Shown one piece after another: positions 23,347 to 27,560 of a stretch of DNA of 40,883 nucleotides (positions are counted from its first letter, which is position 1; each line of letters starts with the position of its first letter). The position numbers were made by a program, and so were the translations under genes. The notes below the pieces were generated by a model that saw only the letters and a list, made by a program, of their open reading frames with translations, did not search any database and was not told the DNA's origin. Origin of the DNA: Bigelowiella natans CCMP2755 (lineage: Eukaryota > Protista > Cercozoa). The stretch is taken from NCBI GenBank assembly GCA_000320545.1, contig ADNK01001031.1, forward strand, positions 1 to 40,883, given 5' to 3'.

Positions 23347-23765
23347 TGCAGCGTCCCTCGACCGCGAGAGAGTCGTTCACGAAATGGCAAGGGGAGGGGG
23401 GAGCGAGATCGGGCTGAAGACGACGTCCTCTGGCGCCTCGGAAGATGAATCGAACGAAGAAGAAAGAACAGCGAGGAGAAAACAGGAAAAGGTTACGAAG
23501 ACAGAGGCCATTTCGAAGTTGCATCGATGAATTTAGCTTGTCGTCGTATCGAAAAAAGGGAAAACTCTGCTTACTCAGCGGCGAGTGCTCCCGAGGATGC
23601 GCCCGATTGGGGACGATTTTTACCCCGAAAACCTCGGGGACCGCCTGCAATTTGTCCTGACTCTGATTTAAGAGAGAAAATCAGTGGATTTTTTCTCGGC
23701 GACAAGGGATTCTGTTGTCGCGAATTAGCGGTGGATATGCGCGTCTCCCTGGCCATTCACGAACG

Positions 23766-24605
23766 ATGATCTACGTCTCCCCCAGCCGCTTCGGCGCGCT
23801 CTCCTTGGGGACCATGGCGATATCCATGCTCCTTCTCGTCGGAACAACATGGAGCAATCGAGCAGATCTAGGCCGTGGAGGATCCATCGCCGCCAACCCT
23901 GCAACCAGGAGGGGGTGTTCCGCAGCTATGACTTCCGTCGCTTCCATGCACCGCCCACAGCGCCTCGGCAGCCTTCAGCCGCAGCGAGGGCCTCTCCCGG
24001 TGCGTGCGATGGCGGGTGGAGCGGGGTCGGATACGTATAGAAAGCTGCAAGGGCAGCAAGTTCTCCGAGCAACTGACGGGCAGCCGGTCGACATCACCAG
24101 CCTTTGGGGTGAGAACGACAGAGCAGTTGTTGTGTTCTTCCGCTCGTTCGGGTGATTTTTCTGCCAGGAGCTAGCGGGACAGCTAGCTCGAGATGTGCTT
24201 CCCCAGCTTAACTCGGCTGGGGTGAAGCTCATCGCTGTGGGGATCGGGACGGGGGAGCGCGCCAAGGAGTTCTGCGCGCACGTGCCGTTTCCGGAGGAGA
24301 ACCTCTTCGCTGACCCGGACAACGTCTGCTACGACTCTCTCGGGCTGAAGAAGGGCTTCGCCACCACCTTTCTCAGGCCTGAGACTCCTTACTCCATCCT
24401 GGAGCGGCAGCAGAAGGACGGTGCGAAGGATATGCTGGACGCGCTGAAGAGGTGGAAGATGTGGATTCCGCCTAAGCTGGAGCAGGGGCTGCAGCAGGGG
24501 GGCACGTTCGTGTTTGACGGCCCCAACGAAGTCTTCCAGCACTTCGATCCTTCTACAGGAGCCCACGCTGATCTCTCGCAGGTTCTATCTGCGGCGCTCG
24601 CGTAA
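23766..24605 (+). CDS. AhpC/TSA-2 (peroxiredoxin-like PRXL2/SelU/AAED1 family) selenoprotein, 279 aa, Sec130 encoded by in-frame TGA; bipartite plastid-type presequence
   Basis: ORFs 23715-24155 and 24195-24605 share a frame and are separated by one TGA (24153-24155) in AVVVFFRSFG-U-FFCQE, the family's CxxC position. Family motifs continue downstream (VKLIAVGIG, LFADPD, QQGGTFVF, HFDPSTGAHAD). A SECIS-like hairpin lies in the 3' UTR. Confidence 0.9.
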
Positions 24606-24750
24606 AGTTTGAAAGTTTGCGATTGAGAATCGGAACTATATGCATCATGCATATGATGCGACAGTCTGCCGTGAATGGGCGTTGCTGGGGCATCGTCTTT
24701 CGGTATAATTGTGTCTTTGCTGGAAAGAAGCTAGTGATGATATGTGTGTG

Positions 24751-24822
24751 GCCAATAATTGAAGTCTCTGCGAGAAAAGCTCTTTTCAATATGTGTTCGC
24801 AGAAACTGATCAAAGGAGTTGA
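24751..24822 (+). promoter_or_regulatory. SECIS element (selenocysteine insertion sequence), non-canonical UUGA core
   Basis: TGAA (24760-63), then GTCTCTGCGAG (24764-74), AAAA (24775-78), loop, TTCGCAGAAAC (24796-806) and TGAT (24807-10). Helix II pairs 10 of 11 positions, with a GA/GA kink-turn quartet and unpaired apical As. Helix I is not clearly resolved. Confidence 0.75.
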
Positions 24823-25300
24823 GTTGCTCCACGAAGGCCGCGCACTCGTCTAACTTGACAGCAATTTTCATTTGAATAACACGATTTTATTAGTCGACGT
24901 GTATGCACGCATGCAGGATGCAATAAGTGAAAGCAGATGCTAGTCATGGTTGCTACTGCCGGCGCGCAATGGCACTAGCGTAGATATAGCAAATGTAAGT
25001 GTATATCGTAGCGATCAAATCATATCGCAGTAATTCCAGCTGCGAGCACAGCCGATGGCTTCATCTAATTCACAGATTGAAACGTTGCCTATACATTCCA
25101 AGTCATATCGAATGCGTGCATGTGGACGAAGTTTACATTTACACGCTCTCGGTGAGTTCGGCGACTACACTACGCTGCTATTAGATACTTGCTTGCTCTG
25201 CCGAAATGAAAATGACGGTCACTGCCTACTATGCTGTCGATACACAGCGTTGCATCCTTTTTTTACTTGAGCTTATTCTCAATAGTAGGGCATCTAGCTC

Positions 25301-25463: not shown

Positions 25464-27560
25464 AGATCAGTAGCTACAAACATACATATTATTTAAATAT
25501 ATGCATATTGATACCGCGAAACATTCTTGTACGTGCTATCCTTGGAATATCTCCCCTCCCCCCCCCCTCTTCCTCAAAAAATTTTCCCATGCATGGCTAT
25601 CACGTATATTATATCAGCATCGTAAAAGAACGCGTGTGCGCGACTGGAGTGGTGTGCTGGCTGTGCTAAATCGACCCACCACTCTGCATTGTACATCGAG
25701 TCCGAAAAGGCCGATTCGTCGTCCGTTCCGTGAGGAGACCAGCACTCAAATCGCTCTCTTTCCTCTGTGTCGAGGTCACTCTCCGCCGGCGTCAGTTCTT
25801 TGAACGTCCGCAGCTTCACGTCGGCTGCCAGTCCTTCTGATCGTTGCTTTTCCAGAACAAGCTGCAACCCCCCCCCGGCAACCGTACCCCATACAAACAC
25901 ACGCCCGCAAAAGCAATGATGTGAGGACGGACGAAGAGGAGGGCATCTGTGCCTTCAAAACTGTATGCCGATGATTCCGTACTACGACGAAGATATATCG
26001 CTCCTCTGCCCCGCCATCGTTGTTGAGTATCACCATCATCATCATCATCATCATCTTCTTCTTCTTCTTCTACTTCACCATTATCATCATCATCACCATC
26101 ATAGCATTCGAGCCATCTAGAGCAACCGACCTTATAGCATCGCCTCGGGAGATTCTTGCTTCGTTTCTTCCGATAGAAGAGCTCTTTCGCTTGAGCGGCG
26201 GGGGGGAGATCCGTGTTCTCCAGGTCCTTCTGCCGCCGTCCGAAGAAGTACAGCTCAAACGCTGCTTTCAAGCCGAACTTCCTCACCATCCTCGCATAGT
26301 CCTGGCTGGATTTTCGGTCCAGCACGAACACGTTTGCGACGAGCTCTTTTGTCGCGACGCCGCGGAATTTGAGGGCGGCGGATGCAAGCGCTGCTGAGGC
26401 TGGCGAGCTGACCCTTTGTTCTACTCCTCGGATGATGAGTGCCTCGCCCTCTTCCCCCCCCCCCCTCTCTTTCCCCTTTGTAACGTCGTCGTGTGACGAC
26501 AGCAGCCGCACCCTCTTACTGGTGGGCTCACCCCCCCCGCAACTTCCTCCTCCACGATATCCTGAGGAGGAGGAGGATGATGATGATGATGATGATGACG
26601 ACGCCAATGCTGCCTGGAGGAATGGATCCGTTGTAACCGTGCAGTTGACAATTCGGTCTAAAACTAGAGTCGTTGAAGCAACACGCTGTGGAGGGAGGGA
26701 GGGAGGGAGGGAGGGAGAGAAGGAGGGAGAGAGTGTAGGGAGGGGGGTGGCGGGCGTCCCGAGTTAGAAGAGTAATCAGGTGCCTTGCAATCCAAATGCA
26801 CGCACACAATAAACAGCCACGCACAAATAATCATTATGATGTACATCATGATACAGATTTATATATGTATATATGGTTTTGGTATCGAGGGACTTCGTGC
26901 TGGAATGTTGAAAATCCCTTTTATCTTTCCACGTGGCAAACACGCAGCAGATGGGGCAGCACCTTCCTATTGAGCAGCGAAACAGCATTCTGTGCGTCCA
27001 TGTATGCCTCGCTCCCAAAGCGAAGGCCCCCCTTCGAGTTAGTTGCATACAATTGGGTTTTTCGGGATGGTCAGGCTTATGTTTTATGAGAATGGTGCTT
27101 AGACTACGACTACTTCTTGTTGTGCGACAACGCTACCGCTCCGAACGCTTTCCCCTTCAGTGTTTCTTCAATGTACATTCTGCTACAAACGCTAACTACC
27201 GAAGAAGGGACACGTACTTTTGTGAGGAGGCGCGTTCTGCCCGCGTCTTCCCCGCCCCCTTGCCAGCTGGTTGATTCCCGCTCCCATGGAAAATCGGGGT
27301 GCTTGATCTGCATTTATGGAAAAGTTGCGGTTTAATCCTCTACGCTATGACTTTTCCTGTGGACATGTTACGCGTGTGTATGTGTCAGGATGACGATGAT
27401 ACCATGATCGTTTCGTATCGGTTTCGCGGTTGCTTTGTCCGCGGGTCGATGCCTGGATGGTTTCTGTACCTGCATCCACGGAGAGGAGGACAGACAGCAG
27501 CTTTATGACGTGCAAACACATACGACGCCCATACACACAGAATTACATAAATACAGGAAT

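Follow-up and report, generated by a model that had tools for sequence, protein, structure and literature searches.

The TGA-Interrupted Gene and Its Transcripts

We analysed a 40,883-nucleotide (nt) stretch of the genome of the chlorarachniophyte Bigelowiella natans CCMP2755 (contig ADNK01001031.1, forward strand; hereafter the window). The subject is one gene in it, a probable selenoprotein gene of the SelU/PRXL2 type, whose reading frame (23766-24605, + strand) is interrupted by an in-frame TGA at 24153-24155. There are 129 codons before this TGA and 149 codons after it, up to a TAA at 24603-24605, and the translation around it is FFRSFG-TGA-FFCQELA, with a Cys codon three positions downstream. 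A mechanical list of open reading frames (ORFs) breaks the frame exactly at the TGA, into 23715..24155 and 24195..24605. A first-pass annotation, made from the letters of the window and such a list, had joined the two pieces into one frame encoding RSFG-U-FFC (U, selenocysteine, Sec) and 149 further conserved codons, and the translation and the alignment of homologues given below both agree with it. The read-through sequence, with X at the TGA, entered only the alignment script; in profile and database searches the two pieces were searched separately. All features are collected in Table 1.

Table 1. Positions of the features of the gene and its transcript in the window.
Feature	Position	Strand	Basis
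Transcribed region (mRNA), unspliced	23755..24895	+	Transcript contigs L014-L018, three with poly(A) tails
Coding sequence	23766..24605	+	279 codons including one probable Sec codon, then TAA; the transcripts have their first ATG at 23766
Putative signal peptide, residues 1-30	23766..23855	+	Hydrophobic core at about residues 9-27; small residues at -3/-1 of a possible cleavage site
Putative transit-peptide-like region, residues 31-82	23856..24011	+	8 Arg/Lys versus 1 Asp/Glu; 40% Ser/Thr/Ala/Gly
Predicted mature thioredoxin-fold domain, N-terminal part up to the active site	24012..24152	+	Alignment with homologues from eukaryotes and bacteria upstream of the TGA/Cys column
False 39-nt "intron" (GT..AG) of JGI model 57608	24129..24167	+	Encodes VVFFRSFG-U-FFCQ; retained in all five transcripts
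TGA, probably read as Sec, first position of the U-x-x-C redox centre	24153..24155	+	TGA in 13/13 other loci; Cys in 6 full-length bacterial homologues; kept in 5/5 transcripts
TGC, putative resolving Cys of U-x-x-C	24162..24164	+	Cys in 17/18 aligned sequences at the +3 column
AhpC-TSA_2 (PF13911) match	24180..24551	+	77 bits; sole PF13911 match in the genome scan
3′ untranslated region, 290 nt	24606..24895	+	From stop 24603-24605 to poly(A) addition after 24895
SECIS-like hairpin	24759..24810	+	5′ core UUGA 24759-62; helix II 11/12 paired; AAAA 24775-78; 3′ core UGAU 24807-10
Small conserved hairpin GGAG...CUCC just 3′ of the SECIS-like hairpin	24815..24830	+	In the minimum free energy folds of the window and L003, one loop substitution

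Five transcript contigs from B. natans or a near-identical strain are colinear with 23755-24895, and all of them retain the TGA. One contig (L014) is 100% identical to this interval over its whole length without a gap, and the other four (L015-L018) are 98-100% identical. Runs of non-templated A directly follow 24895 in three of the five (L014-L016) and mark the poly(A) site, and the transcript starts within about 11 nt of ATG 23766. The contigs of this Joint Genome Institute (JGI) series are transcripts, because the Amorphochlora contig L005 is spliced relative to its gene: it is contiguous and keeps the TGA, whereas the same protein is spread over 5.3 kb at the genomic locus (L004). Five colinear transcripts without a gap across the TGA therefore show that the gene is expressed and free of introns, and that the UGA is present in the mature mRNA. 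This is what the first-pass annotation had anticipated when it saw no intron around the TGA and expected transcripts to retain it unspliced.

The public gene model, JGI Bigna1|57608 (P0122, 185 residues), is identical to the window throughout the overlap and sits in the 90%-identity cluster of the closest match. It starts at Met82 and, by removing 24129-24167, jumps from ...DRAV to ELAGQ..., losing both the U-x-x-C centre and the leader. The suspicion that standard annotation would truncate or mis-splice such a gene thus proved right. It might be argued that the model is correct and that the TGA lies in a short intron, or that it is a sequencing error or a nonsense mutation in a pseudogene, with no Sec involved. 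The removed segment does begin with GT and end with AG, its removal keeps the frame, and the JGI pipeline chose it. However, the intron is refuted by the five transcripts, which all retain these 39 nt, and its removal would delete the FFRSFG-U-FFC motif that is present in every homologue. The comparison with other genomes also bears on this explanation, as described next.

Conservation of the TGA Column

Homologous DNA was read at 13 other loci, 11 eukaryotic (L003, L005, L006/L007, L008-L010, L011, L012, L013, L029, L030/L031, L032 and L044) and two in bacterial metagenome-assembled genomes. TGA, never TAA or TAG, was found at the matching column in all 13. L003 comes from a sister Bigelowiella (89% nt identity), L005 from Amorphochlora, and L044 from another chlorarachniophyte; the closest named homologues of the window protein are those of the chlorarachniophytes Amorphochlora and Lotharella. 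Upstream of the TGA the frame is open and homologous in these loci, with the common pattern ...VLR.TDG...W...ER....F.RSFG. A word search with the N-terminal piece (region 116-162, open frame 23667-24152) matched the window's own protein alone.

The bacterial TGA forms belong to Rokuibacteriota (L033) and Acidobacteriota (L034), both GTDB genomes, and again have an open homologous frame upstream of the TGA. Bacterial Sec insertion makes use of a hairpin that lies within the coding sequence, immediately downstream of the UGA. At L033:1486-1890 and L034:1498-1902, a hairpin is predicted directly after the TGA.

A word search seeded with the acidobacterial piece yielded full-length bacterial homologues (176-197 residues) that read FxRHFG-C-xFC, together with many fragments of 133-138 residues. 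In the joint alignment, 12 TGA forms and six Cys forms fall into a single column, and 17 of the 18 sequences have Cys at +3. Cys or Sec had been predicted for this column among homologues, and TGA in the 13 loci and Cys in six full-length bacterial proteins are what was observed.

We then compared the window with L003 codon by codon. Upstream of the TGA 25 codons differ, eight of them non-synonymously and mostly in the leader. Downstream of the TGA 39 sense codons differ, of which just five are non-synonymous, and the stop codon is TAA in one and TAG in the other. The changes past the UGA are mostly synonymous; therefore, translation continues downstream of it under purifying selection. For a pseudogene, a ratio of non-synonymous to synonymous substitution rates near 1 would be expected downstream of the TGA, and this is not seen against L003. 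Likewise, a TGA at the same column in 13 of 13 other loci, including bacteria, which lack spliceosomal introns, is at odds with an intron or an error in the window. We regard that whole group of explanations as extremely improbable. With the same column TGA in all 13 loci and the flanks conserved on both sides, a conserved frame interrupted in this way is far beyond chance.

The same codon has affected the public records of the family. More than 100 public homologues, eukaryotic and bacterial, are stored as fragments of 133-160 residues that begin directly after the Sec codon, and these short entries are a systematic truncation of the family at that codon. The public eukaryotic homologues (P0002-P0050) are mostly calls of about 150 residues starting with MFCQELA, right after the Sec codon, and the NCBI model of Amorphochlora amoebiformis is among them. 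On the bacterial side, dozens of public entries of 133-138 residues named "AhpC/TSA family protein" or "peroxiredoxin-like family protein" look as if cut at the bacterial Sec codon.

Protein Family and Fold

The first-pass annotation had placed the protein in the AhpC-TSA_2/PRXL2/SelU group, and the domain search leads to the same place. The second ORF piece matches Pfam PF13911 (AhpC-TSA_2) over positions 1-113 of the 114 of the profile (E = 1.4e-21; score 77.4 bits, cut-off 27), and the U/C-x-x-C column is aligned with that of homologues. The upstream piece alone matched no Pfam family. A PDB sequence search with the downstream piece returned only noise (E ~1), and a search of the ESM Atlas returned PF13911 clusters of the same truncated length and nothing else.

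The fold was approached through a bacterial Cys homologue that is 30-34% identical to the window protein. In its AlphaFold model (pLDDT 92), a beta strand is followed by Cys41 directly before helix 42-53. The best PDB match of this model is human prostamide/PGF synthase PRXL2B (9usa, E = 1.9e-11, TM 0.88), and the title of that entry names a C44S/C47S double mutant. By analogy, the B. natans protein would be a thioredoxin-fold reductase or peroxidase with U-x-x-C at the start of helix alpha-1.

SELENOU1, SELENOU2 and SELENOU3 correspond to PRXL2A, PRXL2C and PRXL2B (bioRxiv 10.1101/2025.05.29.656587), and SelU proteins have Sec in fish, birds, Ostreococcus and Thalassiosira, and Cys in mammals (PMC2375036). 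The B. natans protein shares with this family the PF13911 domain and a Sec or Cys as the first residue of U/C-x-x-C at the predicted start of helix alpha-1, and the structure nearest to its bacterial Cys homologue is that of human PRXL2B. It differs in bearing a leader of about 82 residues. Among the close eukaryotic relatives found in these searches and read at the DNA level, only Sec forms occur, and the assignment of the protein is to the family as a whole, above the level of SELENOU1, 2 or 3.

The Acidobacteriota and Rokuibacteriota homologues resemble it in 30-34% identity over the domain, the G-U/C-x-x-C column, the conserved preceding strand and the presence of both Sec and Cys forms. 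Unlike the B. natans protein, they have no leader and also match PF00578 and PF08534. Another comparison is with AhpC_b of Thalassiosira oceanica, as it is described in PMC7539508. That protein also has UxxC in an AhpC/TSA-type thioredoxin fold and prokaryotic Cys homologues. By the same description, however, it carries an AhpC_TSA domain and is found in one diatom with prokaryotic homologues only, whereas PF13911 is widespread in eukaryotes.

[quoted passage not shown]

Sec insertion in eukaryotes requires a selenocysteine insertion sequence (SECIS) in the 3′ untranslated region (UTR). The pattern scanned for combined a core and a helix: N-UGA, a helix II of 12 positions pairing with the bases that precede a GA further downstream, and an AA spaced as expected. 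With both strands of the 40.9-kb window scanned (81.8 kb), the SECIS-like hairpin of Table 1 was the only match of that stringency. When the 290-nt UTR was shuffled with its dinucleotides preserved, 0.7% of the shuffles reached the SECIS score. Helix II belongs to the minimum free energy (MFE) fold of the 60-nt segment. The distance to the element is 604 nt from the UGA and 154 nt from the stop codon, and the poly(A) site follows 85 nt after it. The SECIS that the first-pass annotation expected in the 3′ UTR thus has a candidate, but with the non-canonical core UUGA.

The orthologous genes have similar elements. The counterpart in L003 stands at the same place and has the canonical AUGA; its stem differs by a single change, A to G, so that a U-A pair becomes U-G. 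L044 likewise has AUGA at this place. Textbook type-2 elements (AUGA..AAA..GA, with AA in L030) were found in the 3′ UTRs of L006, L008, L012, L029 and L030, and the MFE folds of L006, L008 and L012, the three that were folded, show the type-2 SECIS arrangement of two stems separated by an internal loop. Four chlorarachniophyte orthologues have the motif UGAAGUC in common at the 5′ core. Among chlorarachniophytes, double changes occur in 7 of the 12 helix II columns, a count that is partly circular, the candidates having been chosen by a pairing filter; the Amorphochlora candidate is weak, with 8 of 12 positions paired.

Compared with the canonical type-2 SECIS, the window element has the UGAN/KGAW quartet (UGAA/UGAU), a helix II of 12 positions, an A run at the expected distance and the location in the 3′ UTR. 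It differs in the unpaired U, instead of A or G, 5′ of the quartet, in a helix I that is not obvious, and in the small conserved hairpin after the 3′ core. A long-range helix between 24746-24755 and about 24839-24848 is possible and would enclose both hairpins. Upstream of the SECIS-like hairpin, 24661-24705 is a second highly conserved block of the 3′ UTR, about 93% identical to L003 and with no fold of the UGA/GA type.

A MAFFT alignment of six SECIS elements (A1) had its 3′ strands out of register and gave no family-wide covariance model. A weak model built from the window element (R1, two sequences) ranked the SECIS candidate in the 3′ flank of a B. natans glutathione peroxidase (GPx) gene first; among known elements it recovered just this candidate and L030.

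Sec Machinery and Other Candidate Selenoprotein Genes

A selenoprotein gene can function only if the genome supplies the insertion machinery, and the first-pass annotation had named tRNA-Sec, eEFSec and SBP2 in this regard. Of these three, the search covered the first two. A tRNA-Sec gene was found (68.5 bits in Rfam; ARAGORN calls it tRNA-SeC and gives its anticodon as TCA), and so was eEFSec, with a domain IV match of 100 bits. SepSecS is present as a multi-exon gene, and exons of selenophosphate synthetase (SelD/SPS) are present as well.

B. natans also has other candidate selenoprotein genes. Four GPx exons and one Sep15/SelM exon each contain one in-frame TGA (contigs C2359, C1529, C3163, C3223 and C3304), and a SECIS-like AUGA element is located downstream of the GPx of C1529 (L038 2971-3029, minus strand). 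A strict SECIS-core filter found almost nothing in the flanks of the GPx, Rdx and Sep15/SelM genes.

Elsewhere in the window, triplet repeats of the GAT/GAA type on both strands at 25989-26194 yield spurious weak Rfam matches to snoRNA and sRNA families.

The N-Terminal Leader and Localisation

The first-pass annotation had proposed a hydrophobic signal at the N-terminus and an R/S/A-rich transit peptide, and the composition of the leader fits this description. Kyte-Doolittle means over 11 residues, a measure of composition and not a dedicated predictor, reach 1.65-2.16 over residues 9-27, and Arg and Lys strongly outnumber acidic residues over the hydroxyl-rich stretch of 52 residues at 31-82 (Table 1). 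The N-terminal extension over bacterial homologues is about 90 residues; the transit-like region is missing from those homologues and poorly conserved against L003. The same layout with a different sequence recurs in Amorphochlora L005 (9 Arg/Lys versus 0 acidic residues) and in L044; three chlorarachniophyte genera share it. A plant PF13911 protein is annotated as chloroplastic.

A bipartite signal is required for entry into the chlorarachniophyte plastid complex (PMC3542566). Proteins directed to the plastid and to the periplastidial compartment (PPC) both have a signal peptide and a transit-like region, and no residue that tells the two apart is known for the transit peptide's first position (PMC6105332). 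Judged by its sequence, import of the B. natans protein into the plastid complex is plausible, and the leader does not separate the stroma from the PPC.

The protein may instead be a selenoprotein whose leader sends it to the PPC, to the endoplasmic reticulum and secretory pathway or, through some of its transcripts, partly to the cytosol. Besides the shared type of leader in PPC and plastid proteins, this would agree with transcript L016, which lacks 17 nt (23843-23859) and would so uncouple the signal peptide, and with the plastid proteome paper, whose main text does not mention protein 57608. On the other hand, the transit-like region is strongly basic and its type is conserved in Amorphochlora and L044, and screens built on a public model that lacks both the leader and the active-site peptide would be handicapped. 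We consider such a destination a real possibility, though not the most probable one. The gap in L016 is not bounded by GT..AG; an assembly error, an isoform or a strain allele may account for it. At 23843, L015 carries A>G.

Interpretation of the Locus

Taking these results together, we conclude with a probability of about 0.9 that the locus is a single-copy SelU/PRXL2-type (AhpC-TSA_2) selenoprotein gene of B. natans, in which a UGA in the middle of the gene is read as Sec. The unspliced mRNA 23755-24895 would be translated from ATG 23766, Sec would be inserted at UGA 24153 under the direction of the hairpin at 24759-24810, and translation would go on to TAA 24603. Insertion would be carried out by tRNA-Sec, SepSecS, SPS, eEFSec and presumably SBP2. 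The first 82 or so residues may act as a leader of the signal-peptide and transit-peptide type into the four-membrane plastid complex. Judging from the rest of the family, Sec would attack the substrate and form a selenenylsulfide with the Cys at +3, which would then be re-reduced by a thiol system.

Several points weigh against this interpretation or parts of it. The fold evidence comes from a bacterial relative that is just 30-34% identical and not from the window protein itself. The search for the insertion machinery was confined to tRNA-Sec, SepSecS, SPS and eEFSec. The leader was judged by composition only, and the 17 nt missing from L016 would shift the enzyme out of the frame of the signal peptide. 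The covariation in helix II is partly circular, as noted above. The Rfam model SECIS_1 (RF00031) gave no match in the flank at E<=10. However, this silence carries no weight, because RF00031 also misses the textbook orthologous SECIS elements (15 related loci) and has a single sub-threshold match in the whole 91-Mb genome; it has little power in these lineages.

Another point is the base before the SECIS quartet, which is U (24759) in the genome and in five of five transcripts, versus A, A and G in three other chlorarachniophytes. According to the literature, an unpaired A (or R) is conserved here, and only UGA/GA is invariable (PMC2647825; PMC3753652). The gene could therefore be a selenoprotein gene by descent in which the change from A to U weakened or abolished Sec insertion, so that UGA 24153 mostly terminates translation and the gene is decaying or poorly productive. 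The AUGA, AUGA and GUGA of the other chlorarachniophytes and the conserved A/R of the literature (PMC2647825) would suit such a decay, and lineage-specific amino-acid changes are, on our reading, a little more numerous in B. natans than in L003. However, the genome has no second PF13911 copy, all sampled strains express this gene, and its downstream substitutions against L003 are overwhelmingly synonymous. It also keeps all 18 invariant columns of the family alignment A2, which is true by construction as the window is one of its rows, and the U leaves intact the quartet's UGA/GA, the only part reported as invariable (PMC2647825). We consider decay of the gene unlikely.

A more far-reaching version of the selenoprotein interpretation can be put forward only tentatively, at somewhat less than even odds: that the product is a functional selenoprotein imported into the plastid complex, and that it uses a SECIS with a uridine at the supposedly conserved purine before the quartet, fixed in every sampled strain.

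Relation to Known Selenoproteins and Significance

Jiang et al. (2020) surveyed the selenoproteome of the same B. natans assembly with a homology search around Sec-TGA codons. They report 23 selenoprotein genes, and count SELENOU among the most widespread Sec families of algae (PMC7539508). This locus is very probably on their list of 23. The first-pass annotation had called the selenoprotein hidden; that holds for the public gene model only, and not in view of this published survey of the same assembly. A gene of this kind was already known in marine algae, and knowledge of their selenoproteins is unchanged by our result. The finding is the correct detection of a gene that is misannotated in the public model, and the only thing out of the ordinary is the U that precedes the SECIS quartet (UUGA, not A/G-UGA).

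The result matters for annotation, since the public model 57608 lacks the catalytic U-x-x-C centre and the targeting leader. Proteomic, phylogenetic or localisation screens that use such truncated entries will misjudge the family. In B. natans, a model alga whose green plastid is secondary, the gene probably adds a selenoenzyme that is targeted to an organelle. It also supplies a natural variant, a U, at a position of the SECIS that is mostly regarded as a conserved purine. If the more far-reaching version is true, this variant would be natural evidence that the pre-quartet position is dispensable, or that the SECIS-binding protein of this lineage has a relaxed specificity. In that case, a Sec-containing protein would also be carried across the four membranes of the plastid.

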